A stretch of DNA of 63,548 bases, filler included, from Perkinsus chesapeaki ATCC PRA-425 (Eukaryota > Protista > Perkinsozoa), in NCBI GenBank assembly GCA_013115145.1. It is 10 parts of 10 records of this genome, joined end to end, with 100 filler letters (N's around TTAATTAATTAA, not from the genome) between each part and the next. Parts side by side here need not be neighbours in the genome. Positions count along the whole stretch, not along the records: positions 45,025 to 52,258 come from JAAPAO010001041.1; 9 more parts are not named here. One strand, written 5' to 3'. The notes beneath the pieces are model-generated. The model worked only from the letters and a program-made list of their open reading frames with translations. It was not told where the DNA came from and did no database searches. How positions within the stretch are numbered: position 1 is the first letter of the stretch; each line of letters starts with the position of its first letter. Positions 2,100 to 52,258 of the stretch are shown piece after piece. The position numbers and the translations under genes are program-made.

Positions 2100-4400
2100 T
2101 CCCGATTGTTCACAATTTGACAATACCAAACCGACCATAGGCCACGCTCCGGCTATCGACAATGAAGCCTGGTGTCCTTCAACCGATGAGGCTCTCCAGT
2201 GGGAGGATGATGTTGCCGATACGATATGCGGGGTTATATACCTTACTTGGCTAACTCGGGACGGAAAGGGCTATGAAGCCTTACATGGTGGACACGAAGG
2301 CCGTGCCAAGTAGAAGTATTGGAACTATGACCAGTAATGATAATAAATCAAAGTGTATTATGGCCAACAATCGAGGAACCTGTAGGGGTGTGATCGAGTA
2401 AAGTGGGTTGGTGGAAATAATAAATCACCCATTTGGTGAGGGCCAAGTAGTCGAGGAGACGGAAACAACACAGAAATGCTACAAAACATATAAGGCATTC
2501 CAGTAGGAGAGCATTCCTGAAATAATGACACAGTCGGTATGTCAGTGACCTCTGCACGCATGTACACCGACTTGTCACTGTAATTCGAAGATGTCATAGT
2601 GATAAAGAGAAGGAGTCTTGCAACGGCAAGAGTCCATAGAACCACAGACGGTGTAGTAATCAACCTAATGGAAGTTATGTCACTAGAAGACCAACCGGTG
2701 GAGGGCACCACTCACTGAAGACCAACCGTCAGAGCACCAGAGAGAGGCGCACCAGAATACGCCTTATAGTGACTTCTAAGGTAACTGAAAATGTTAGCCA
2801 CATAATGCAGAGAGCGGTATGAAAAAAGTATTTCCTCACTTTGTAAACGAGGGATGTACCAGAGTAGCTCCCATACTTAATAAGATCACCATTAACGCCG
2901 TAACAAATAGACTATCTTGTAGTAGCTGATAAGGCAGTAGCAATTAAGCTGGAGAGTTGAAAAAACTCACTCCAAGCGGGGTTGTACCGGCTAGCTCAGA
3001 TATTATCAAAATCGGTGCAACATGTATGATAGTGGGGTCTCCTCGGGCACGAACTATCCCAATGTGGGCCTGTCACATTGAGAACATTGAACGAGCTGAG
3101 ACACTGTCATCACAGTGTGAAAGTAACCATCAAGTGGTCGACTCTTTATGGTCATTTCAACCTTTGTGACGTTTTGATGAGTTATGCACGAGCCACTCAG
3201 ATTAGCCGATACTTTCCCTTTCAGTTTTGCGCCCTAACTTGACCAATAATAGTTGCCTCCTTCGCAACCTACTCACCAGGTTCACTGAATCCTCCAGCAG
3301 GAACGGACCAGGTCTTGCTATATAACACACTCCTATAATATTAATAATAGGAGCTTCGCTCGAGTGTCAAATTCCGACCTTTAAGATTCTCCTTGGGGAA
3401 CTCTGGTATCAAACCGATGTAGCTATACGATTTAGTTTCGGGAAGGACGCCAATCAGAGCCTCCAAATAACGTTTGAAATCGTCGCTCGAATGCAGCTGA
3501 TAATACGATACGTATTCTGGGCCTGCGGCCTATAGTGAATCACTGCTACCGATGACTATCTCACCAGGAGTAGTGAAAAACGTATATATATTAGATCTGA
3601 TAGCTCTTGTCCATATAACAGCATAATCTGGTGTTGTTATCAATAGTAATATAACACTGGTGTAGAAGGCAATTCGTAGGGGGTTCGCCATGGTAAAAAG
3701 TAATGGAGTTAAGCGAGCATCTTGCTCACTTGTCATACCTTGCATTTCCTCAACGGCACAATGCATCCCCGACGATTCCAGTCGCCGCCTTTGTCTCTTT
3801 GACATGCATGCCATTATAGCGTTAATAGCGCTTTATTCCACCTTAGCAACTGTTGGTTCTGCCTGGGATTCTGCTCGTGTTTCCTCGGACTCATCAGGGT
3901 CCACCTCTTCACTAGGCAGGATCAGCACTGTAAGGAACGAAACCACTCTTATGCTCCAACGGATCTCTTGAATGAAAGAGGCCGTCTATAGGATGACATC
4001 TGGGGCCCATTCTGAAAGCTTCTTCGATTTTGAGAAGCAGCTCAAGAGGCCCGGCCGATTTCAAGAGTCTCTTCCTTTCGAAGAAATTTTTAGTAAAATT
4101 ACCTCTTTGGCCGCTCTTTCATTTAGAGGAGCTAGTTGCTCATGGAAGCCCTCTTGAAGTTGATTAGAATTATTTCTGAAACCGACTGAGCCAAAAGTTT
4201 CACCCTGTCTTAAAGAGAATCCTCTGGGGACTTTCGAGATGGGTCCCTATATAAACGAACCATAAGCCGTATAGCTCACCACGATCGATAGGCCGTTCTC
4301 TATCATCTTGTATCCGGTAACATTCGTCTTTGTATTTTTCAGCGTCGCCTCGTATACGTTTCGAGCAGCAGGCTGTACAGGTCGAGATTATTGAGGTCAA
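2100..4400 (-). CDS. Multi-exon polytopic membrane protein, possibly TRP/polycystin-like channel (boundaries approximate)
   Basis: Spliced segment LLLECLICFVAFLCCFRLLDYLALTKW|VPRLLAIIHFDLLSLLVIVPILLLGTAFVS across a 49-nt GT-AG intron resembles an S4-S5 region; further TM segment LRIAFYTSVILLLIT at ~3650. Full model not resolved. Confidence 0.3.
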
Positions 4401-5036: not shown

Positions 5037-6002
5037 ATGGCCGACTTCGGCACGGCTCATTCAAACCGCCACTTCGTCTATCTAGCTCAGATCAGTTTGC
5101 TTGGACGTTCTGGTGTCAAAGGCAATACTGACGTGACATGGGCTATATGGAAATACATTCGTCGTCCTTGCCCCACGGCAATTGTTCATCAAGGCTCTAG
5201 CACAAGGAATGGTTTCCTGTCATGTCTGGCTCCCTGTCGCCTAACATCAAGCGTTATTATTGAGCGATTCCGTGATGAAGCTGATAGAAGGATTATGGAG
5301 CTCACACATAACGGTGAAGTTCGACAGTTGGTTTCTGACGCTAGCCGCATGCGCAAAGTTGGTTCCGCATGCAGCGATGGTTCGGTGCTCTACTGTGTTA
5401 ATCTAGCTGGCTGGGGTATACTGAGGAGACGCCTCGATGATGGAGGACGCTTGTCGACCATCGGTCTGCCATTTTTTCAAGATGATGATTTTCCTAAGGA
5501 CGTCTGTATTTCCAACTCAAAACTGTTCCTCCTGACTCTTGAAAAGTGTCGAATTTATGCCTACCTCATTGCTAGAAAGGAATGGAGTTATATTTTTGAT
5601 ATTGAAGGGGGCGTCCGATCGTTCGACGCTAAAAGTGGCTCTGATTCTGATTGGGGAAGCCAGTTCCTTTATGTTGTCCACGGCCAAGGCTCCCATGAGA
5701 TCCACTACAGACGGTCTTCTGGTGAAGTCATTGTCACTCCTCTGAGGAACGCCTGGAGCTGCAAGTTTGTCAACAATTCTGACGGGCGGGCATGTGCGGT
5801 GTCCACACACAGTGAAGATATGTGGGAACCTTTGACGTGGTCAGTACATCTAGTGGACCTCTACTCTCGATCGGTGTTATGCACAAGTACTCCATTTTTG
5901 GGGCATCATATCCGATTTATGGCTATTACCAATGAGTGGAATACTATTATTGCAATGGGAGGTCAAAATGATTATCAACTTGTGAGGTTCAATTTGATGT
6001 GA
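5037..6002 (+). CDS. Hypothetical protein, 321 aa, single exon, beta-strand-rich
   Basis: Uninterrupted ATG-TGA ORF with normal protein composition; no family recognised. Confidence 0.6.
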   Translation: MADFGTAHSNRHFVYLAQISLLGRSGVKGNTDVTWAIWKYIRRPCPTAIVHQGSSTRNGFLSCLAPCRLTSSVIIERFRDEADRRIMELTHNGEVRQLVSDASRMRKVGSACSDGSVLYCVNLAGWGILRRRLDDGGRLSTIGLPFFQDDDFPKDVCISNSKLFLLTLEKCRIYAYLIARKEWSYIFDIEGGVRSFDAKSGSDSDWGSQFLYVVHGQGSHEIHYRRSSGEVIVTPLRNAWSCKFVNNSDGRACAVSTHSEDMWEPLTWSVHLVDLYSRSVLCTSTPFLGHHIRFMAITNEWNTIIAMGGQNDYQLVRFNLM

Positions 6003-8702: not shown

Positions 8703-9734
8703 ATGACCGGTACTCGCCCGTTTGACGACGAGATTGACACGGAGCTGGTGCGTTTACGTGCTGATTTAGAAGACTCATCTCCTTCTGTCCCGTCGTCTCC
8801 CGGCTCGCCGGGGGACGGCCCAGCGTTAGTCGATAGGTCTTCTCTTGGGGCGTCCAGTTCTGCGGTGCCGGTACGGGAAGCTGAAGTAGTCCCTCTGACG
8901 AGGTCGTCCGCTATTCCACCGTCACCTCCTCTTCCGGTGGTTCCTGCGTTGCCACCTCCCCCACCGATGTCGATGGTGCGGGGGGAACGTTCTGTGCTCT
9001 TGAGTGCCGAGTGCACGTTGTCCCGTGCCAGTAGTGGTGAGCCTCCGGCTCGGCGTCCCCGGCTGCACGGTCGTGAGGTTTCCGAGGGTTGGGCGGAGGA
9101 TAGCCCGTACGCTGCAGAAGAGAGACCTTATTTCTCTGCAACTTCCGAGTGGGAAACCAGGGCAAGTCTTTTATTGTCTCAGGATGCATCTAGGCCGCCC
9201 CCTACGGTGTCCCGATCCCCGACTCCGAGGTCGTCTGTTGGTTCCCTGCCGCCTAGTTCCGCTTTGGAGGAAGCTCTGGCCGATCTGCCCCCTCTTCCGG
9301 AAGCTCCGACCGCTGAGATGATTGCCCGTCGCCGGAGTGCTGCCGAAACACGTGTGGTACTTCTGGAAAGGCTAAGGCATATAGAGGAGGAGCTGAGGCG
9401 CATGGGGCCGCCCCCAGCGAGGTCGTCCCGGCGGTTCCCGCGCCCTTTACCCCTGGTATCGTTAGATGGGGTCCTGGTGCGACCTCTGAACTTGAGGACT
9501 CCCGATCCTTCGTGGAGCGTATGGACGACGTTGTGGATGAAGATGCCTGGGTATTATGGGATGATGGTATTTATCGTGCTGCGGGTGAACACCGAGATTA
9601 CTCTGAGGAGCAGGTGGACGAGCTTAACCGAGTCGCCAATGCTGGGCCTCACCCTGAGGATAATTGTGGTCCCGAGGATCCGTCTGCCCCGGTGGCTCTA
9701 CCCCCGGTACCTCCCGCGTTTGATTGGGATATAG
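8703..9734 (+). CDS. ORF1, Pro/Ser-rich protein with short coiled coil (unknown; gag-like composition)
   Basis: ATG at 8703 (MTGTRPFDDEIDTEL...); GC-rich; sequence after ~9450 looks out of frame. Confidence 0.6.
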   Translation: MTGTRPFDDEIDTELVRLRADLEDSSPSVPSSPGSPGDGPALVDRSSLGASSSAVPVREAEVVPLTRSSAIPPSPPLPVVPALPPPPPMSMVRGERSVLLSAECTLSRASSGEPPARRPRLHGREVSEGWAEDSPYAAEERPYFSATSEWETRASLLLSQDASRPPPTVSRSPTPRSSVGSLPPSSALEEALADLPPLPEAPTAEMIARRRSAAETRVVLLERLRHIEEELRRMGPPPARSSRRFPRPLPLVSLDGVLVRPLNLRTPDPSWSVWTTLWMKMPGYYGMMVFIVLRVNTEITLRSRWTSLTESPMLGLTLRIIVVPRIRLPRWLYPRYLPRLIGI

Positions 9735-11990: not shown

Positions 11991-14832
11991 ATGTCTCGGC
12001 TATTAGCATTACTTGCTTTGCCTTTATCGGTGAGTGCGCCAGAGTTGTTCTGGTCTGTAATAGGGCTCCTCAGGTTTCTGGATTCGGCGTTGAATGCGAT
12101 ATCCTCGACAACGATAAGTTCAATATAAAAGATGGAAAGTACGACTATTACGACGGTTTGGCGCTCAAGGTGAGTTGTGTGCGTAGCTTTGGCTTAAATG
12201 GCGTGAGCAGGTAAATTCATTTTTCCTGAGCAAAGGCATATCTTTTTTGCCGAGACTTGATGCAATCTACAAGTTCGGGGTAGGCGGCGGCCATTATAGC
12301 TTCTACAACACTCAGCTGTGACCCGTTTATTCAGGGCAGCTGTCTCAAGCGCTGGGAAACGCAGATCAACTTTACAGAGACCCCTCCGATCCATCGGCCC
12401 CTCATGAAGCTGGGTGCGTCCATCGTTCGACACTCAGCTCGTGCTACTCATTTTTTGCAGACGCGGAAGGCTATGATGACGCTAATAGATTTTACAAGGA
12501 GGAGCAGGCCGCCCTTGAACAGGCACGCCGTGGACCCTCCTCATGGCCCCTGCTATTTCTCTGATTTCAGAATGTTACTCGTTTTTTTGGTCCCGAGGGC
12601 AAGAGGACATACACGTCCATTGAAGACCTTCACAGGGCCTATCTCAGTAGAGCCTCAGACCCTGTCACTGTCATCAAAGTACCGATGATTTCAGTCTTCT
12701 GCACAGACCGTATGTCATCCATTTCAGGGAGTCCTCCAAGCGGCTATGAAACTGAACGTAGATGTTCACGCTATCGAAAAGCTTCTCCCTTCCGCCGAGG
12801 TTCTCTCGATGGCGGAAAAGAGCGCGGCTCGTTTTAGAGAGGGAAAGCCGTTATCGATGCTTGATGGAGTTCCTTTTGTTGTCAAGAATGACGTTAATGT
12901 GAGAGTAAAGTGGCTGCTGTGTGAATCGTCTACTATTCAGGTGAAGGGTATATCAACTTTAGCTGGAATGTCGGCCACGAGCAAAGTTGGCAAGGCCATA
13001 AAACCTGCGGTAGGACGATGACATCAGCAAGTCTTACCGATCTCCTCGCTACACAGGCTGAAAACGACCGCGTCGTGGCAAGACTTCTCGACAGCGGGGC
13101 CATCCTTATCGGTGTTGCTGCCCAAAGTGAGCTCGGTCTTAGTCCCACAGGATTCAGTGGTAGGATGAATGATTGGTCGGCGCGTCAGATCATGGTCTAT
13201 TTCAGAATGGAAGAAGGGACCCCTTAACCCTCACCGATTGAATCGTTTCACTGGAGGGAGTACTTCAGGTGTTGCAGCTGCCGTCTCCATGGGCTTGGTA
13301 GTATCCCGCAGATGAGCCTGTTAGATTATCATCCCCATCAGGTGCCCTTTGGCGTTGGAACAGACGGAAATGGGTGCAATAGGATACCGGCGTCCCTTAC
13401 AGGTGTAGTTGGTATGGCTCCAACGTATGGTCGAGTGGGTTGACAGTAAGATGTTCGCTTGAGTTGACGTTTTTTCGTTAGGTCCGGTTTGACGCCCCCA
13501 CTGCGAGCGCCTTTAAAAATGTCCACTACGGTCCGATTGCCGGGAATGTCGAGGATGTCGCCCATGTTATGAGCGTTATAGCCGACGGTGAGTGGGATAA
13601 ATCTATTAAACTATACGGAGACCGCTTGCTCGCCTATCACTTGCGGTTGCCGTTATATCAAACTCCTCCGTGTAGGAAAAGAGAACCATGAATACGACAC
13701 TTATTATCACATGCACTACAGGCAGGGTTTCCTTCCCAAGATGCATCTGAGAGCCTTCACTCATCCCTCCAATGAGGTTGTTAAAGTCGGAATTTTCACC
13801 AAATGGGCAGATTCATGCTCCAAAGACGTTATAAAGGTAGCGGCTATCCCGAGCGGCACGCCCTGATAGCTTTTCAAAGGTCTTTTATGATACTGTGCAT
13901 AAGTATCCTGGCTGGAAGGTCGACCACTTCACCGTGCCACAGATGGCCGGTCAGTTGAAAACCCAAAGTAAGTATCCTTGAGGATCATCGAAGCCTTTCT
14001 CATTCAGTTATATCTCTCCTCGGTGAGTACGGTAATCTTCTCAGTGAAGGAAGCCTATCGCATCTAGAATACAGCTCCAAAGTGGGATTCCTTAGGAGGT
14101 CGGGTACCCAATTCAATGTGCGATTATTTAGATAATGGTCGGATTGGCAAGGACAGTAGCTGGGTCCAAGTCCAAGAAGAAGGCTGTGTCATCCATTCGA
14201 GGTTGGGCCATGGCGAAATGGTGAGGAATATCATAACTCACAATTCATCTGGCTGCTTGCCGTATCCTTGAGGCATGTCCCTCACTTCGCATCCATTTCA
14301 CGAAGATCTTCGTTTTCTAGTCGAAGCATACGGAACCACTTCTCTTCTTCAGGGAGGCCGTTTTTAAAAAGGTTGACTTTATTGTTGTGCCAACAGTACG
14401 GGAAGTCGCTCCCAAGATCCCGGGCAAATACTTTGACCATCGTAAGGCATCGTGTCCTCGGTTATACTGCTTTCAGGAGCAATACTCAAACCGGTGTTAT
14501 CTGCACATGTTTGCAGCTTCCAATGCTTACCTCGATTCTTCGATTAGGTCCCTTCGACCCAGCTTTCGAGGAGATGTTCGTGCGATCAACTTGGGTCACA
14601 AATCTGCTGGGGTATCCCTCGATCAGCGTTTCTATGGGAATGAGCAAGGAAGGTTTCCCTATGGGCTTACAGGTGAGTAACCCATTGGTTTCCATACCAT
14701 GTCAGACCGCGACTTTAGGTCATTGGCAAGCATTGGGAGGATGACAAACTTATGAAAGTCGCCAGCCAGTTCCAGCAATACACCGAGCCTACTCGAGCCA
14801 AGCCGACGATGTACAACCATGAGCTGATATAG
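11991..14832 (+). CDS. Amidase-signature enzyme, plant-type FAAH-like paralog 1 (signal peptide; nucleophile position is Cys)
   Basis: Multi-exon. MSRLLALLALPLS|VSG leader; MLDGVPFVVKND (catalytic Lys); FTGGSTSG; GTDGNGCNRIPASLTGVVG; C-terminal GFPMGLQ|VIGKHWEDDKL; TAG at 14830-14832. Confidence 0.9.
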
Positions 14833-15123: not shown

Positions 15124-17915
15124 ATGGTCAGTTTTCCTGCAATGTGCTTTAGCCTACATATCCTCAGTCTCCTGCTCTGCTTTATGCCTGGGGTACCAAC
15201 AGGATTACCTTTATTAGATATTTGTCTAAGTGGATTTGACTTTCAGGTTCGAGCTACAGGCAGTTATAAATGTAATGCACTCAACGTCTTAGACTTCAAC
15301 ATGAGACCAATATCCGCTCCCACAGCAACCGGAAAGAAACTTGGGGTGAGTGTATATGTGATATTCCTACTCTGTATCTTAATGTCGTCCTCGCTCAGTT
15401 TATCGCTTGGTGGGCGAGGAAGGGGCTCCTAGGAAAGCCACTACGCAGCTACATGCTCAATTCTAATGGCGTAGGCTCGTTTGTCTTCAACGTCGGAGAA
15501 TGTTGTCAGATACAATGCATCCCTGAGGTCGCTAAAGAGGTCAGTCCTGAAATAGCTCCTGTTAAGTTTCCGATGATAGCACTAAGTTAGTTTTAGTATA
15601 TTTATCATTTGCATTTCACTCGCCGTTCTTAGGTGATGAAGATTATGAGAAGGCGCAGGAATACTATAGTAAAGAAGAAGCCCAACTCAAGAAGGTAAAA
15701 CGGAATATTCGATTAAACTATGTTGGGTCGTTATCCCCTCGCTCAGAATGTATCTCGGTATTTTGGTTCGGGCATCAACAGTCCCTACAGGTCAATTGAG
15801 GATTTGCACACGGCCTATATGAAGGGCAAAGCCAATCCAGTGGACATCATTGATGTACACAGATAAGCCTTCTCAAATAGCTATGGTGTTCTGATTAGAA
15901 TGTTCTTCAAGCCGTAAGAGACTTTAATCCAACTCTAAAAGCTTTCAAGGAGCTTTATAGTGTTAAAGAGATCAATCGCTTGGCCAAAGCTAGCGCCGAG
16001 AGGTTCAGACAAGGCAAACCAAAATCCATGCTTGATGGCATACCATTTGGTGTTAAAGATGAAATGAATGTGAGACCATTGTTACTCGCACATCCGAGAA
16101 TTTTCTCTGCAGGTTATCGGCCAAAAGCTGCTTGATGGCATTAATCCAAAGGGGAGAATGGCGAAGTCTCTGCCGATAAAGGTGAGCTGGATCGTTCACA
16201 ACATCCAGCTTGGATGCTTGGGCAACTTTGTTCTGTGATTAGACGACAAACGATCCCGTTATTGATGCCCTTCTCGATGCTGGTGCTATTCTCATCGGAA
16301 CTACAACGATGCATGAGTTAGGCATCAGCCCGCTGGGATACAACAGTAGGTGGTTTACGGTTAACAGAAGCTCTATATTGACTCATTTTTAGGTTGGTAC
16401 CAAGGACCCCTCAATGCCTTTGACACCCGCCGCTTCACTGGTGGAAGCTCCTCGGGTGCTGCTACTGCCGCGGCAGCTGGAATGGTATAGACAGCCCCAG
16501 CAGTGTTTTCTTGTATTATTTACCAGGCTCTATTTTTCATTGGCTTTGATGGTGGTGGATCTATTCGTATCCCTTCTGTTTGGTCTGGAGTTGTTGGGCT
16601 TGCTCCTACCTTCGGCAGAGTGAGTTCACCATCTCGTTCCCGATCTCGCAATGAAGATTCCGCTAGGTTCGTTATGACAATGAAGAACTAAAAGTTTTCA
16701 CCACCCTGCACTGTGGACCGATCGCTGCTAATGTAGCCGATGTCGCGCATGTTATGAGTGTTATTGGGAATGTTCAATACAAAAGTACGTCTACTAACAG
16801 CTCAGATTGCTGCGAGACATCACATGTTAGGAGGTCAGCACTTCTACGATGGTCTCTACCAAAAAGCCGCTGGCAAGGAAACAATGCCACCGATGCATCT
16901 TAATGCTCTTCTAACTCCCTCTCCTAAAGGCAAATATAAAGTTGGCGTCTTTGATGACTGGGTGAAGTTCAGCAGTGAAGAAGCGCAATCCGTATGAACG
17001 GTCCCTTCGGCTATCGAGTTTGTCTATTCTCATCGTCTCAGGCCTTCAATACTGCACTAGAAGCTATGAAGGATCAATGGGATCGTCATGAGTTTCGTAT
17101 GAAAGATATGCAGGATCAGGCTCTCTCTCATAGTAAGTGACATCCGTATCGGTTCAATACGTGATTGCTGCGCTCTTTCAGCTTTCGCTATCGCCACGGA
17201 GTTCGCCGATACTCATCCTGACCAGCCACTGGATGGCTACGAGTACAATACACAGGTTAGACTCGATCAATTGCGGTAACTTGGAACACCCCGTGTTGTT
17301 AGATATCTCTCGCTCTTGGTCGAGATATTGTTAAGAAAAAGGATGTAGTCGATGCCATACCTAAGCTGCGTGGTTGGGCTATCCAACAATGGTGAGCCCA
17401 TAAGCCGTCTGCTGGGGTACAGCCGGATTCGCTTAGGAATGAAGTTTTCAAAGGTGTTGATTTCATTATCACACCGACTATCGCCTACGGTGCCCCGGAG
17501 ATCCCCTCGGGTGTCTTTCAATATGGTAAGCTAACGTTCCGTGTGCTTAACACCACTCTGGGGAGTCACGCTCATAGATTATTATCAACTATGAGTTTGT
17601 TATTGTTGCTCATCAGGTGAATTCAATCCGACAAGAGTTTCGGAAATGTTACGCTTTATATGGCCGACCAATCTGGTTGGCTTCCCATCCATAACCATTC
17701 CAGTTGGCCAGAACAAGGAAGGAATGCCCCTCGGCATTCAGGTCAGTAACTTATATAACAACTAGGATGCATCTTCATTAATATCTTATCAGATAATGGC
17801 TCCACACTGGCAGGATGACAAACTTATCAAAGTCGGTCTAGATGTTCAACGTCAACTTGCTGGCGGTCGTATCCGTCCCGAAAAATACTATCGGGACATT
17901 ATGTCCGAGCAGTGA
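15124..17915 (+). CDS. Amidase-signature enzyme, plant-type FAAH-like paralog 2 (intact Lys-cisSer-Ser triad)
   Basis: Multi-exon with intron positions shared with paralog 1; [57 protein letters not shown]; TGA at 17913-17915. Confidence 0.92.
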
Positions 17916-45024: not shown

Positions 45025-45036
45025 CCCGGCGCCGCT

Positions 45037-45530
45037 GTTGTTAAGGTTGTTAATGTTGTTAAGGTTGTCGGTGTTGTTAAGGTTGTTGTTGTTGTCTAGG
45101 TTGTTGTTGTTGTTGTTGTTGTTGTTGTTAAGGTTGTTGTTAAGGTTGTTGTTGTTGTTGTTAAGGTTGTTGTTGTTGTTAAGGTTGTTGTTGTTGTCAA
45201 GGTTGTTGAGGTTGTTGTTGTTAAGGTTGTTAAGGTTGTTGTTGCTGTTGTTAAGGTTGTTAATGTTGTTAAGGTTGTCGGTGTTGTTAAGGTTGTCGTG
45301 TTGTTAAGGATTTCGTTGTTGTTAAGGATTTCGTTGTTGTTAAGGTTGTTGTTAAGGTTGTTGTTGTTGTTCTTGTTGTTGTTGTCAAGGTTGTTGTTGT
45401 TGTTAAGGTTGTTGTTGTTGTTAAGGTTGTTGTTGTTGTTAAGGTTGTTAAGGTTGTTGTTGTTGTTAAGGTTGTTGTTGTTAAGGTTGTTGTTGTTAAG
45501 GTTGTTGTTGTTGTTAAGGTTGTTGTTGTT
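45037..45530. repeat. Punctuated (GTT)n microsatellite array with AAG interruptions
   Basis: GTTGTT...GTTAAG units over ~495 bp; a ~53-bp block is duplicated at 45034 and 45244. Confidence 0.95.
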
Positions 45531-45706
45531 ACAGTTGAGAATGGAATTGTTGTCTGGAAATACCAGCGCGCGGGCTTCGGTTCGGGCGCCACAATGCAGA
45601 AGCATCAAGGTTGGCAAGCACGCAATGGTCGTAAATTCCAAGCTCGAGAAACTCCCATCAAACGCGCAGTTATGGTCAGCAATAGCGTTAGTTGAAGTGC
45701 TTTGTT

Positions 45707-48700
45707 ATGCCCTTCCACGATTTCCAACTCGATAGTGACCAGAAGGTTGTACTGGAGGTTGTTCTCGAGAGCATCCTCCTCCCACAAAGCGAACCTCACT
45801 ATCATTACATAACAGGTTTCGCTGGTACGGGTAAGACACACTTAGCAAAAGCGATTATCGCGATTACGCGCGATTGCAACAAACGCCCGATAGTAATATC
45901 TTGGAATGGAATGGCGGCTCGGGTTCTAGAAGGTGATACGTTTATGAGCTACTTCGGGCTCAAATATGAGAGATCCGGCAAAGTAGGGGATAATGCCTTC
46001 ATGAGATATCCTCGAGAGTTAGCTGCTCGAATATTGGAAAGCCTCTCAGCTGCCAAGCGCAGAGATCTCTTGTCCGGAGAAGCTTTCCTGATCGTGGACG
46101 AGGTGGGGATCGTGCATGATACTATATTAGACGGATTGTCGCAAGCTTTGAAGACCCTAAGGAAAGAAGAGTTACATGGAGATAGACCTTTCGGAGGAAT
46201 AGTTACCGTTCTCCTAGGAGATCCTTGTCAGCTTCGAACCATCAATCTATTCGAGGAATCTTCAGACTTCCCTCCAAAGGAGTTCCCGACTGGTCCTTTT
46301 TGGAAGAGTATGGTATGGCAGGAAATGGACCCTAAGATAGCATACCTTACGAAATTCCACAGGGGGGAATCGGATGATGATTACTTACAGCTCCTATCCG
46401 AGATACGCAGCGCCGAAGAAATTATTCCTGGCGTGCCGCGTTTCAGCCAAAAATCTCTCCAAGTCCTCCAAGATATTCGGGATCGGGATGCAGGAAATAA
46501 CCCACCTAGGTAAGGCTACAGTATGATCCGATAATAATATTATTAGATAATGATATGTATTCCTTTATATTGATTAAAATTATATTGAGTCAATGTAGCA
46601 TATAAGACGTATAATTCGCTGGCAGAATACTCCATCTGAAATGATATAATTCTCATTGAGAACTTTTCAATATATGCACTGATTCTCCAACTCAGCACAT
46701 TATCACACATTAATACATTCATTCTCAACACATTATGTAAATTTCAATTAACTCTTTGAATAACTCATGATAATCATTTTGGTTCCATTTTCACCAAAAT
46801 GCTCATAGTAGGAAAGAAAGCTATTCTTCAGATTCGATCATACTATAATATGCCTGACTAATGCCGAGGCCGACAAGTACAACGAGAGACATTTAGCTAG
46901 CCTACCGGGTGATGCCTATATCTTCGGGTCTATCGATCAGGCAGGTGAGCAGGAAGCAAACCTTAACGGCATCGATATGGAAGCAGTATCTAAAATGGGG
47001 TACAGACCCGTCGTTAAACTGAAAGATGGATGCAAAGTGATGGCCACTATTAACGACCCACTGAAGCGCTTCGTTAACGGTCTCACTGGTAAAGTTGTTG
47101 GGATTCGACGTGCTGGAGGGTCAGAATCAGTCGTTGTTAAGTTCGATGGCACCGCAAATAATGTGGAGGTAGAGCGTTATGTCTTCACCGTCGAAGATAA
47201 AGACGGTAATGTGATATTCAGTCGAAGACAGTTTCCATTGATGATAAGCTATGCCCTAACGTGTCATAAGACGCAGGGGTGTACCTTAGATGGAGTGTGG
47301 GCCAAACTGCCATTCGCTAGGGTACCCAAGAGCAGCAATCATAAAATCGCAGCTCTCTGGAGTCAAGATTGGCTACGAGGCTCAGCTTACACCATGTTGA
47401 GCCGAGTAGGTTCCCGAGACAAAATCCGCGTTTTCCCCCTGAGGAACGTAAAATCTGCCGAAGACTTGAACCCCATCTTCTTCATGGATCCACAAGCTCG
47501 AGCATTTGATAAGGACTGCATGGAGAGAAGCTGGCTGCGTACAGGCCAAGTAAATGCTCCACCTATTCACCAAACGCAACCTCCTCAACCGAGCAGCGAA
47601 GAAGCACATCCTTCTAGAGGTGATACATTAATAACAGTCGAGGACATCCAGCGATTAGAAGATAAGATAGGGGACGTGCTGGAAAGCGTCAATGTAAACA
47701 ACACGAGATGGGTAATGTTGCAGCACTTTGAAGCTCGAAGGCCGAGCCATGGGTCTGGCGAGACCTTTACTAACCCAGTCTTCTACTGTTGGACGAAACC
47801 GTCGCTGCGAGAGAGAATCATCTTGCTCCCAGCTGATTGCCAACTCACTTTCTACGAGCGCCTATATGAGCACCTGAATATAACAAGAGATACAGTCAGC
47901 GAGGAACAAATTCTAGATATGATCTGCGAGGTAGATAACGAGACACAGAGGCAAAAGAGACCTCTTACGAAACGAGTTGATGATGCGAGCCACATACCCT
48001 GTACACTACCTGTACAACCGTCATCGGCCCAACAGAGCGTCCCGAACGATGTGAGCGATGACCCAGAACAACCGGCTCCGAGTTCACCCACGTCGCCGCA
48101 GAACGTGGATGAACCCATGTCCACACAATCAGACAGTGATGACTCGCCGATAGACGTTGAAGAGGTTCAGGCTGAGGGTTCTGCTCCACTTCCCCGGAGA
48201 GAAGGTTTCGACAGAGAGCCGTTCTTGATATTCCGAGGAACTATCAGAAGAGTTGTTGAGAAGTACCTGGAAGAGAATGCTCATTTACGGCTCACCGGAT
48301 GTTCGATAGACTCACTTCATGAAGGTCCCATATCTACAGTTCCATCCGACATCCGTCGCAAAACTTGTGTTCTTTTATGCAAGAGAGCCATCCCGCCGTC
48401 TTTAGTAGGGAAGGAGCCATCCACACAGGGACGCCCAGATTGGCGTAGCTGGCCGGAAGCTGCCTGCCCGATGACAGAAGTTCTGGTTAAATCTTCTGGG
48501 GAATTGTGTTACCTGTATGGAAAAAGCAGTGGCAGCGTCACAAAAGAGCAATGGAGAAGCCACCAACACCCACACAGGAGCTACACCTGCCATAGTAGAT
48601 ATTTACCGCCGGAAATAGCAGACGATTGGTGCAAGTGGATGTCAACTTGCGATACCCCAACGATAACGATGTCGAAATTAATAGAAAGAACAAACAAGAA

Positions 48701-50743
48701 GAACATGGAGGGAGCCTACTCACCGACTTCAATGAGATTCATTGCCGAAGGTAAGATGAATTATCCAGAAAAGCTCCGTGGAGCGTACCGCTCCATTAGT
48801 GAGCATGGAAAGTCCGGATTAAGTGTTGATACTTTTCTCTCTGACCTGAACCCAGTTATGCACACCATTGGCGACGACTTTGCAGCTGCAATGCTACCTG
48901 TATTAGAGAGCCTTCGCAGGGTAAAGGGCGACCTTGCCACGACCGGGGACCATGATCGAGTAAGAGCAGCAGACAACTGCATCGCGTTCAGTGACGTACT
49001 CTGCGAAACCGACGACTTGGGAAAGCTCTCAAACTTTTGCCTGGTGCTCAGCAGCTGTCGAATGTTGGGTAACCTGGAGAACTGCGTTACCATAGGACTG
49101 GATGCAAGCTTCAACCTATTATGTGCAGATCTCGCCGTGTGCGTAATCTGCAACCTCAGGCGAGGATCCACTGCATTGCCGGTAGCACTTGCGATAATTC
49201 GGCGAGAATCAACCGCATCCGTACACCACTGCCTCCGAGTTCTTGCCAAAGCAGCAGAAGTGGTTGGCCTTGTAAACTGGAAACCTCGAGAAGCCGTGCT
49301 AGACGGCTCTCCAAGCCTTCATAGAGGGCTGAAAGAAGCACTAGGGGATAACATAAAGACCACCAGCTGCTACTTTCATGTCATTAAACGAGCCAAGGAC
49401 TGCAAGGGGCGCACGCAGCTGGACGCAGCGACATGGAGGGCAGTCAGGAATGACCTGAAGCTAATGGCATCGTCATGGAGCCGAGTAGAATGGAGTCGAT
49501 TACGAGATCTATTTTGTGAGAAATGGAACGAAAGTAAGCCCTAGCAACGACGCATTTTTACAACACACAGCTATAAATGATCCGCTTCATGATATAATAA
49601 ATGAAATACCAATACAAAGCGAATATATAGAGGTTGAATCCATTGAGGCTCACAATTTCTGGGCAATATAGGAACCGAGAATATCTCTGTACTCTAGAAA
49701 CCCACTCTGTTCAACCTATGAAGAAATTTGAAATTACCAAGCTTTATGCATCACTTTGAACTACTGGAACAAATTTTGTAACAATATTCACGAGTCCAAC
49801 GACGCAGAACCCACACATAGGAAAGTATTACTTACAGGCGCTCGAGACCAGGAATGACTCTGACTTGCTGAATGTTTTCCTTCCGTCAGTTGGACTGAGC
49901 AATAGCAGAGTGAAGGCCTTCTTGAAGGAGTTCCGAGTTTATCTGAAAGAGGAAGAGTGGCGCAGTTACTGGGCCAGGCACGCATGCGAACAATATGGGC
50001 CACGGACTAACAATGCGGTGGAGCGATTTAATCGAGAGATGAAGGACCGCATAACCATCGACCGCCGACCTCGAACATTGTCCAACTTCGCATCCTTCGT
50101 GAAAAATCCGCCTTCATGGGCAGGACTTTCACAATACGGTAGAGCAACGACGCGAGGACAGATCACCAGAGACCTTCGGCGACAAGCAGCTAAGGACTAT
50201 GTGGGCAACAACTTCATGCAAGTACCGAGAACCTGGGCATCAAGTGTTGCTAGTGCGCTAGGCAAGCCCCAAAATCAATGGATTTTCAGTCGCAAAGCTG
50301 ATAATACGGGGCCGAATTTGCGAGAGAATGAGAAAGCAAAACGCTTACTACGAAGTGAGTACCGTGATCTCAAGGATGCGCACAAGCTACACAAGTCATT
50401 CTGCATCGTTAGCTATACTACCAGCTCCAATCCAGACTTACCGGCACCTGCAGGACCCTGGTGCAGTTGCGATATGTGGGCCAAAAACGATGCCTGCTCG
50501 CACGTAGCTTGTACCGTGTATGCGGTAGGGGGCGATGGATCTGAAGAAGCACAAAAGCAATGGAATGAAATATTCGCAAGTTTTGACAAACCGGCGAGAC
50601 GAAGAGGAGAAGGAGGGCGATACGACACTCAAGAGCTAACCGAAACAGTGCGATACGGCTTAAACAGACACAAGAGGAAGCCCCAAGAAATGCCAGAAAG
50701 TGAACCGAGCGGGAAGAGAAACTGTCCGGAAGAAAACATGTAG
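45707..50743 (+). CDS. Pif1-like helicase-MULE transposase-SWIM fusion protein (3 exons, ~1452 aa)
   Basis: Exons 45707-46509, 46832-49533, 49890-50743 total 4359 nt in one frame with GT-AG introns. Pif1 motifs: ITGFAGTGKT, IVDEVG, FGGIVTVLLGDPCQL, YLTKFHR, CLTNAEADKYN, RRQFPLMISYALTCHKTQG, AYTMLSRV. MULE motifs: GLDASF, VLDGS, CYFH, RTNNAVERFN. SWIM: CSC-x7-CSH. Confidence 0.9.
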
Positions 50744-52258
50744 CACAGACACACAAGAAGACAGGTAGGGCATAGGCATTAAGATATCGAGGTTACACGT
50801 TGAAATATTATAGGTACCAACCACTCAATTGTTTATAAACCGATAACCAAAGCTTACGTATTCGTAGGCAATAAGTTGTATCAGAAGATGCATAGCACTG
50901 CTCCCATGTTGACGCTGTTGGTAAACAACTTGTCTGGTTACAGTAAGTACAATTGTGTGAGGTGCCACCAAATAAATTGCCTAGTGAGCTAATACAACAC
51001 GTAAAATACCTGACAATCACAGGGAGAGGATTGCTATACTCGATCATGTCCTACCTCAACCTTGCGGACAACCTTCTACAAGACTGACTTCCTATAAGTG
51101 GGTCTCGGCAACGTTCGATATAAGGCAATTAACGGGCCCATGAGAAGGTAATCAGCAAGGATAATCACTGAACCACGTAAAACAACAATCACAAACACGA
51201 CATTGAAAGCACTACAACTCAAGCTAAAGCCTGCATATTAACGAGCAATAGGATATAAGGGGAAGGGAAAGATAGGCGCTATGAACTCGCACGCAACGCG
51301 AACCGTTTCAGATTTATGGGCGAGCGAGATATGAGGTCGTAGGGTCGAATGCCGGCAAGAGCATTTTTAAACATTTTTTCCACGCGCGCGAAAGAGAAAT
51401 GAATGAATAACTCCTCACAGACGGGGAACTTCCAAAGTCCCGGTACCCAGAGAGGGGTAGACTGACTCGTATAGGTGTGCGGGCCGAAGGCCCGCTCAAT
51501 TTAACCGATAGGTCAAATTTCTGAGAAGTGATACTTTTGGGACCACCGTGTGATACATTTGGGACCGCGCAGCACCAAACAATCAAAACAAATGTTAGCT
51601 GCTCGTATTCATACAACTAAGGTGATGAGTATTTCAAGCTGTAAACTGATCTTTCTACATCAACTACAGATGTATGCTGTCTCGGTGGGTTTTCGACAAC
51701 CTTTATTGCCGGGTATTTGATATGTAGATGTGATGTCTGAATTATAGACATAGTCAAGGCTAATGGTTGTCGGACAATAATTAAATTGTCTTTGAATATA
51801 AGAGTGTACACATTCGAATGTTTGGGTGGTCTTTCGGATAAGTGGGTTGTTTGCACCTAATGGACACCAAGGGTCTATAAGAGACCGCAGGTCTTTAACG
51901 TGACCGAGAAATGGTTAGTCTTGTCTTGTAAAGCAGCTGCAACATTGCGCCGCACAATAGTAGGTGAGGGTGCTAATATACTTTGTAAAATATGATGTCG
52001 TCGAATAAGCCCATTTATACAGTAGAAGTCGATCTCATTACTGGTTCACCATAAAGTGGGATGGTAGAAATAATTCCATAATTAATTCAATGAACAGAGT
52101 GAGTGATTGTGCGGAATTGGATAATATGCGCCGCTGGGGGGGGGGGGGGGGGGGGGGGGGGGGGAAAAAAAAAAAAAAAAAAGGGGGGGGGGGGGGGGGG
52201 GCGGCCCCCCCCCCCCCCCCCCGGGGGGCGGGGGGGGGGGGGTTGGTTTTGCTATTGG

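Follow-up and report, generated by a model that had tools for sequence, protein, structure and literature searches.

A Pif1 helicase joined to a Mutator-type transposase in one gene: an apparently autonomous transposon in Perkinsus chesapeaki

What is a gene which reads as a complete helicase at one end and as a transposase at the other, is it really one gene, and what kind of element does it belong to? These questions are raised by a locus in a 63,548-nucleotide stretch of DNA (the window, by which we mean the whole stretch that was analysed) from Perkinsus chesapeaki ATCC PRA-425; Perkinsus is an alveolate and a parasite of bivalves. Positions 45025-52258 of the window are a whole P. chesapeaki contig of 7234 bases, and this contig carries most of one transposon of the Mutator type (Mutator-like element, MULE); no toxin or virulence gene is among its contents. 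We consider it very probable that the locus is an apparently autonomous transposon of the MULE superfamily, with one three-exon gene coding for a fusion of a Pif1 helicase and a MULE transposase. The predicted product has, from the N- to the C-terminus, a Pif1 helicase of superfamily 1B (SF1B), a linker, a Cys/His module, a MULE DDE core with a CxxH signature and a SWIM finger.

The gene is put together from three open reading frames (ORFs) on the + strand (45692-46513, 46977-49544 and 49865-50743), which after splicing give a frame of 803 + 2702 + 854 = 4359 nt, i.e., 1452 amino acids (aa) and a stop codon. The intron borders can be read directly, as GTAAGG at 46510 and a CAG ending at 46831 for intron 1, and as GTAAGC at 49534 and a CAG ending at 49889 for intron 2. 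Exon 1 leaves two bases of a split codon which is completed by exon 2, and exon 2 leaves a single base, the codon of which is completed by exon 3. Both introns are AT-rich, their GC content being 0.33-0.40 and that of the exons 0.47-0.52. The public gene model FOL47_000315 (P0001, 1373 aa) gave a 100% identical match to the exon 2 query, and its junctions (NNPPR to FDHTII and EKWNE to IGLSNS) are exactly equal to both introns. It starts at a later internal Met (MSYFGL...), 79 codons downstream of 45707, and therefore lacks the Walker A motif, the stretch 45707-45943 being omitted; the homologues P0003 (P. marinus, 1550 aa) and P0004 (P. olseni) have N-termini which support the start at 45707. 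The exons were searched one by one, and P0001 was used where a contiguous protein was needed. An earlier note on this DNA had joined the same three ORF pieces through two introns (46510-46831 and 49534-49889) into a 4359-nt frame of about 1452 aa, and splice sites, phases and P0001 junctions all agree with it. Related loci used for comparison are L001 (P. marinus), L002 (Logan assembly of run SRR12548988), L003 and L004 (P. chesapeaki paralogues), L005 (P. olseni) and L007 (a second P. chesapeaki copy). The features of the contig are collected in Table 1.

Table 1. Features of the contig at 45025-52258, in window positions
Feature	Position	Strand	Remarks
Minisatellite, GTTGTTAAG / 18-nt unit, ~28-55 copies	45036..45531	+	Just 5' of the gene; contig start inside the array
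Exon 1, Pif1 domain 1A	45707..46509	+	803 nt; Pfam PF05970, PDB Pif1 chains
Intron 1, GT..AG, phase 2	46510..46831	+	AT-rich; junction as in P0001; position matches L001, L002, L005, L007
Exon 2 start, Pif1 domains 2A/2B, motifs IV-VI	46832..47540	+	phmmer vs PDB
Exon 2 linker, acidic and Pro-rich	47541..48350	+	Translation
Exon 2 Cys/His module	48351..48659	+	Alignment of family copies
Exon 2 helical region and MULE RNase-H-like catalytic core	48660..49533	+	phmmer, alignment, AF2
Intron 2, GT..AG, phase 1	49534..49889	+	Divides DDE domain between CxxH and E; position kept in paralogues
Exon 3, catalytic E, SWIM-type CxC..CxH, basic tail, stop 50741-50743	49890..50743	+	Alignment with classical MULEs
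Element 3' terminal region	51286..51572	+	Conservation vs L002, shared 17-mer
Flanking DNA outside element	51573..52258	.	No similarity to L002 beyond tip; no Pfam match in its ORFs

The first half of the product is a helicase. Exon 1 matches Pfam PIF1 (PF05970) with 74.8 bits (E 1e-20; gathering score 25.9) and its aa 28-237 match PDB Pif1 chains over domain 1A with E 1.5e-13; aa 6-164 of exon 2 match residues 223-370 of human PIF1 with E 1e-11 in a phmmer search against PDB. As the PDB Pif1 matches of the two exons lie at adjoining positions, intron 1 splits one helicase. It begins ~35 aa from the N-terminus of the protein and has its Walker A motif, GFAGTGKT, at 45815-45838; the translation of exon 1 also shows Walker B (LIVDEV), the Pif1 signature region and motif III (GDPCQL), and motifs IV-VI are legible at the start of exon 2, ending ALTCHKTQGCTLD. 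With both RecA-like domains, motifs I-VI and the Pif1 signature region present, this is a complete SF1B helicase of the Pif1 type, and membership in the Pif1 family predicts that it would unwind DNA in the 5'->3' direction at the expense of ATP. The best helicases outside Perkinsus are 26-28% identical and of the bacterial Pif1 type, a Helitron protein first appearing at E 1.8e-6.

The second half is a transposase. Its first catalytic D (GLDASFN) is found at 49101-49103, the second (VLDGS) at 49302-49304, the CxxH (CYFH) at 49368-49379 and the catalytic E, encoded by exon 3, at 50021-50023 in TNNAVERFNREMK; the conserved columns of the first four of these residues are D268, D335, C357 and H360. 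A SWIM-type CxC..CxH at ~50450-50518 (CSCDMWAKNDACSHV) aligns with SWIM-bearing MULEs, and all of these residues stand in conserved columns of alignments with bona fide MULE proteins. The SWIM zinc finger is frequent, but not universal, in MULEs. In Pfam it matches with 16.9 bits, which is below the cut-off of 19.6. Because the Pfam matches of the window protein itself are absent or sub-threshold, the MULE and SWIM assignments rest on phmmer, on the paralogues and on structure. The phmmer search, with residues 490-900 of exon 2 against 1.84 billion representative proteins, gave 49 matches. The named strong matches that were looked up are all Perkinsus proteins, one more strong match is from an environmental metagenome, and most of the strong matches scanned exceed the Pfam MULE gathering score. 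A Pfam MULE domain was also found in each of ten weak matches scanned (E 7e-7 to 1e-4), nine of them above the gathering score, with up to 70 bits. The paralogues, 34-45% identical, exceed it as well (30-41.5 bits vs 27.6), and several of them are labelled 'SWIM-type domain-containing' in UniProt.

A model of the MULE segment, built by AlphaFold2 (AF2) with the family alignment, has a mean predicted local distance difference test score (pLDDT) of 87. The IS256 family is a prokaryotic relative of the Mutator superfamily, and the best Foldseek match of the model, ahead of integrase cores, is the IS256-family transposase ISCth4 (E 4e-3, prob 1.00; PDB 6xg8 and 6xgx). With VIA-align the catalytic cores of integrases scored Z 8.0-7.2 and ISCth4 Z 7.4, its 153 aligned residues being more than in the other three of the four best matches; lower scores were obtained for Hermes (Z 6.1) and for the transposase of the P element (Z 5.8). 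A search of the ESM Atlas gave no usable match. ISCth4 differs in being bacterial and in having neither helicase, SWIM finger nor introns, and its sequence identity is ~16%. The structural scores are modest, and they point to an RNase-H-like fold and to the group of transposases which share the CxxH signature.

Two further domains were seen in relatives of this transposase. In the P. marinus protein and in two paralogues from P. chesapeaki the C-terminus carries a Cys-rich, PHD-like extension (..CGCGRGHW..WHVDC..WYCFTCR), located at 7480-7663 in L001 (aa 1472-1540 of P0003), at 10972-11169 in L003 and up to 6589 in L004, which the window protein lacks. P0055, a protein of 1065 aa from JGI metagenome 3300059473 and an environmental relative of the MULE clade, has an OTU cysteine-protease domain at aa 41-133 (E 4.5e-9); this domain is N-terminal, occupies the place of the helicase, and is reminiscent of the protease-bearing MULEs of plants.

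Between helicase and catalytic core lies the Cys/His module. Its C, C and H and three Trp are invariant in the family alignment, and its second H is almost so. The candidate zinc ligands are C...C...HxH with ~28 and ~31 residues between them; the AF2 model of the module (pLDDT 71) has predicted beta strands. It gave no match in Pfam, and in a fold search nothing above Z 3.8, so that it matches neither the FAR1/WRKY profiles nor their folds. It is presumably a DNA-binding zinc module of the transposase, and a kinship with the FAR1/WRKY domain of other MULEs would be a guess. The linker before it is acidic, Pro-rich and fast-evolving. Inside this linker (47541-48350) all paralogues nevertheless have a short conserved module, NPVFYCW...FY..L...LN(I/L)T, conserved in P0003, P0005 and P0006 and reading, for example, NPVFYCW...FYERLYEHLNIT.

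The earlier note had read the same order of domains from the sequence. The claim that all SF1B motifs are intact agrees with the Pif1 matches of both exons and with the motifs in the translations, and the C...C...HxH segment it had pointed out is real and conserved. The order itself holds by alignment; of the three profiles proposed for checking it, PIF1 gave its clear match, SWIM stayed under the cut-off and the MULE profile did not match.

Are the two halves parts of one gene? Exon 2 is one uninterrupted 2.7-kb ORF which holds the C-terminal half of the helicase and, after the linker and the Cys/His module, the D, D and CxxH of the MULE core. Since it is stop-free across helicase motifs IV-VI and both catalytic Asp, the fusion does not depend on splice prediction. 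When P0003 was mapped on the loci, the coding sequence fell into three blocks, interrupted near residues 269 and 1130, in the window, L001, L002, L005 and L007, and the fusion layout with introns at matching positions was found in paralogues of ~35-45% identity from P. chesapeaki, P. marinus and P. olseni. PIF1 and MULE Pfam matches are both present in P0060, P0019, P0017 and P0003, the MULE match of P0003 and the PIF1 match of P0017 being just below the gathering score. It might be argued that a helicase gene and a neighbouring transposase gene have been wrongly merged, or that the contig is chimeric, and annotators have indeed split the L005 and L007 loci into two gene models each. These splits, however, fall at conserved introns (intron 1 in L005, intron 2 in L007) and not between helicase and transposase. 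As exon 2 alone joins the two halves, and as the collinear order is repeated in the independent Logan assembly and in three species, we regard such an error as extremely unlikely.

The ends of the element are seen in related copies. Self-comparison of the L005 locus gave terminal inverted repeats (TIRs) of 564 bp with 99% identity (2702-3265 and 17160-17723), and that of L003 gave TIRs of 115 bp with 96.5% identity (5558-5672 and 12798-12911). The hallmark of Mutator is a target site duplication (TSD) of typically 9 bp (range 8-11 bp). In L003 a perfect 9-bp TSD, CCTTCACAC, directly adjoins the TIRs (5549-5557 and 12912-12920); in L005 a perfect 9-bp TSD, CTGTTAAAG, is found at 2687-2695 and 17730-17738, separated from the BLAST-defined repeat by six poorly matched bases. 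With inverted ends and 9-bp target duplications in related copies, the family is mobile. The L005 element is ~15 kb long and encloses the helicase exon as well as the transposase exons. The layout of a complete copy is a 5' TIR, a tandem-repeat array, the fused gene, ~0.8-3 kb of 3' sequence and a 3' TIR, flanked by 9-bp TSDs.

The window copy has the 3' end of such an element. Similarity between the window and L002 extends ~820 nt beyond the stop codon; as far as ~51285 it is weak and has gaps, from 51286 on it is strong, and it ends abruptly at 51566, so that the region 51286-51572 is better conserved than the 3' spacer. It contains a palindrome, GCGGGCCGAAGGCCCGC, at 51479-51495 (a 17-mer GC hairpin) and two direct repeats GTGATAC(T/A)TTTGGGACC at 51528-51544 and 51550-51566. 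The identical 17-mer is present downstream of the gene in L001, L002 and L004 and within both TIRs of L005, and in five lineages, the window included, its distance from the inferred tip is 77-79 nt; L003 shows another GC hairpin, 85 nt from its tip. Because the shared 17-mer has a fixed distance from the tip elsewhere, the 3' tip in the window is put at ~51572 (+/- 2). The 3' end of the window copy aligns with the TIRs of L005 and L003. Its 5' TIR is missing since the contig starts inside the minisatellite. Inverted-repeat searches inside the window's contig gave chance or homopolymer pairs only, and the earlier note had stated that no TIRs were found; this is an effect of the truncated contig and does not hold for the 3' end. 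The same note had suggested a search for other copies, their termini and TSDs, and had proposed an autonomous helicase-equipped Mutator-like family in perkinsids. The L003 and L005 ends answer the former, and with the fusion in three Perkinsus species they bear out the latter. Rfam and tRNA scans of the contig found nothing, and the conserved 3' patch is therefore no known RNA gene. A tRNA suspected beside the L005 element was not confirmed.

Tandem arrays lie directly 5' of the ATG at every locus with 5' sequence, and the contigs tend to end there; the arrays are probably the reason for the assembly breaks, and the family can thus be flagged as a repeat which breaks Perkinsus assemblies. Their units are unrelated: 9/18 nt in the window (45036-45531), AAC-type and ~550-570 nt in L001 (1-2000), 16/32/96 nt in L005 (4318-7864, 3.5 kb) and, by eye, ~60 nt in L007 (1-490). 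L005 also has 42-nt subterminal tandem repeats inside both ends (3110-3265 and 16086-17315), with ~4 copies on the left and ~30 on the right. Its enlarged intron 1 contains a self-complementary palindromic stretch of 436 bp (8945-9380), which coincides with the split of the gene model and may be a nested insertion. Fragments resembling one half of the TIR hairpin motif (GCGGGCTTCGG.. and GGGCCGAAGG) are found 115-480 nt 5' of the ATG, at 45567-45592 in the window and 2175-2192 in L001; they are non-palindromic and may be due to chance.

How old is the fusion, and is it maintained? The exons of the window gene show 82-86% identity to those of L002, and the introns do not align. The ratio dN/dS in this comparison is 0.14 for exon 1, 0.145 for the C-terminal half of the helicase, 0.25 for the linker, 0.086 for the Cys/His module and MULE segment, and 0.089 for exon 3, at dS values of 0.5-0.87. 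The helicase, transposase and SWIM parts are all under purifying selection (dN/dS 0.09-0.15). The pairwise identities of helicase and transposase co-vary with r 0.96 (six copies, 15 non-independent pairs), which fits a single ancestral fusion. The family is old and low-copy, and has at least five lineages in P. chesapeaki besides members in P. marinus and P. olseni; in the L003 and L004 copies the N-terminal part of the helicase is missing. L002, the closest relative (81-89% aa identity), has one in-frame stop codon in the C-terminal half of the helicase (exon 2, between 1155 and 1755) and is probably inactive.

Could the helicase be a passenger without function for the element, either a host fragment captured in the manner of Pack-MULEs or a remnant of a Helitron? 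MULEs are known to take up fragments of host genes. Here, however, the helicase is full length with all its motifs, it is fused in frame with a dN/dS of 0.14, and it has been kept in lineages only 28-45% identical, co-diverging with the transposase. Helitrons have an HUH Rep N-terminal to the helicase and are without TIRs or TSD, and in eukaryotic mobile elements Pif1 is known from Helitrons, as the partner of their HUH nuclease. The Helitron protein Helraiser shares with the present protein a transposon-encoded SF1B helicase of the Pif1 family fused to a DNA-breaking enzyme, and a GC hairpin near the element end. In the Perkinsus family, however, the helicase has a DDE transposase as its partner, on the C-terminal side, the ends are TIRs flanked by 9-bp TSDs, and the hairpin is in both ends. 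No Rep/HUH domain (Helitron_like_N) was found by Pfam in any exon or other ORF of the window's contig, in accordance with the earlier note, which had seen no HUH motif. Helraiser (PDB 7lcc) matches the C-terminal half of the helicase with E 3e-5 and is not listed for the N-terminal half; it is thus farther away than the human and bacterial Pif1 proteins (1e-11 to 1e-13). Without an HUH Rep, and with TIRs and TSDs in its members, the family is not a Helitron. Pif1 in eukaryotic transposons is otherwise typical of Helitrons (PMC4778049), and this speaks for a remnant; taken together with the lack of a Rep domain and the greater likeness to cellular and bacterial Pif1, we find a functionless helicase, of either origin, very unlikely.

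Its transposase, ends and TSD place the family in the Mutator superfamily. With other MULEs (MuDR MURA and the FAR1/FHY3 type; PF10551 with SWIM PF04434) it shares the TNNxxExxNxxxK motif, a C-terminal CxC..CxH which fits the SWIM pattern, an N-terminal Cys/His module, and long TIRs with 9-bp TSDs in complete members. It differs in having a whole Pif1 helicase (~500 aa) fused N-terminal to the transposase, a conserved GC hairpin which lies in the TIRs at 77-79 nt from the tip, tandem repeats arrayed between 5' TIR and gene, and a Cys/His module with no match to FAR1/WRKY profiles or folds.

A number of observations weigh against the view of the window copy as an active transposon with a fused, working gene. 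The MULE segment in the window gave no match to Pfam PF10551 at E<0.1 in the exon 2 search. Only one end is visible, so that a TIR pair and TSD of this very copy cannot be seen. In DNA folding the stability of the hairpin is not exceptional in its 108-nt context (z -1.47). That both introns are removed from one mRNA is predicted from the genomic sequence, and a role for the helicase is likewise inferred, the two options given below being speculation. Finally, at the 90% level the protein database has a single copy of each lineage; for this reason recent activity of the window copy is unproven and domestication is possible. The copy would then be an immobile host gene derived from such a transposon and kept for DNA repair or programmed rearrangement, which would agree with its intact ORF, with the strong purifying selection in all domains, and with the closest relatives being in other samples and species, not in the same genome. 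A domesticated gene, however, would have no need for the non-coding 3' region, in which hairpin and tip motif are conserved up to an abrupt end at the expected tip; sister lineages retain TIRs with 9-bp TSDs, and the catalytic D, D, E and CxxH are all retained. We therefore consider domestication improbable, and an apparently autonomous transposon remains our preferred interpretation.

If so, the DDE core would excise and integrate the element by cut-and-paste as in other MULEs, the Cys/His and SWIM modules would bind the element ends, and the tethered 5'->3' helicase would act in cis at these ends. It might open the TIR hairpin or cruciform, or the flanking duplex, and in this way aid synapsis or cleavage. 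Alternatively, cellular Pif1 being known for promoting D-loop migration, the helicase might drive a D-loop migration of this type by which the donor gap is refilled from the sister copy, with a net gain of one copy. A more far-reaching proposal is that transposition by the DDE enzyme depends on the helicase: the Pif1 motor would be loaded at, or would open, the GC hairpin 77-79 nt inside each TIR and thereby license synapsis or cleavage, or it would couple excision to break-induced or gap-repair synthesis, driven by Pif1, by which the donor copy is restored. We regard this dependence as possible but doubtful. If true, it would make the element a mechanistic hybrid between cut-and-paste MULEs and helicase-driven Helitrons.

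According to the general view, cut-and-paste transposases of the DDE type do not need a motor protein. A Pif1-MULE fusion which is old, in frame and maintained by selection, and which comes with a fixed hairpin in both TIRs, is thus a system in which a contribution of a helicase to DDE transposition can be probed, be it in end opening, target choice or donor-site repair. Helicase-encoding DDE transposons have been described as KolobokH, with a RecQ helicase, and AcademH (PMC9587614, PMC10045372). These are cut-and-paste DDE elements which encode a helicase, as the present family does, and KolobokH has helicase and transposase in one protein; they belong, however, to the Kolobok or Academ superfamily, not to MuDR, and the helicase of KolobokH is RecQ instead of Pif1 and lies downstream of the transposase, not upstream. 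With the Perkinsus family, the Mutator superfamily and the alveolate parasites join this short list. A search of the searchable literature (Pif1 with MULE, Mutator, Perkinsus or DDE transposase), which does not cover Repbase and Dfam, found no account of a Pif1-MULE fusion; with the same coverage, the remark in the earlier note that Pif1-carrying MULEs had been observed in a few lineages found no support. Neither helicases nor Perkinsus are mentioned in a eukaryote-wide survey of MULEs (PMC6446971), and a paper from 2013 only counts 21 MULE-domain proteins in P. marinus (PMC3558436).

It should be noted that proteins of the family are already in public databases as hypothetical proteins, and that existing names say only 'ATP-dependent DNA helicase' or 'SWIM-type domain-containing protein'. 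The present analysis corrects this annotation, whose gene models are cut short or split. The 3' end of the window's contig is marked by homopolymer runs of G(>=18), A(10) and C(18) at 52131-52242, which are probably an artefact of sequencing or assembly rather than part of the genome.

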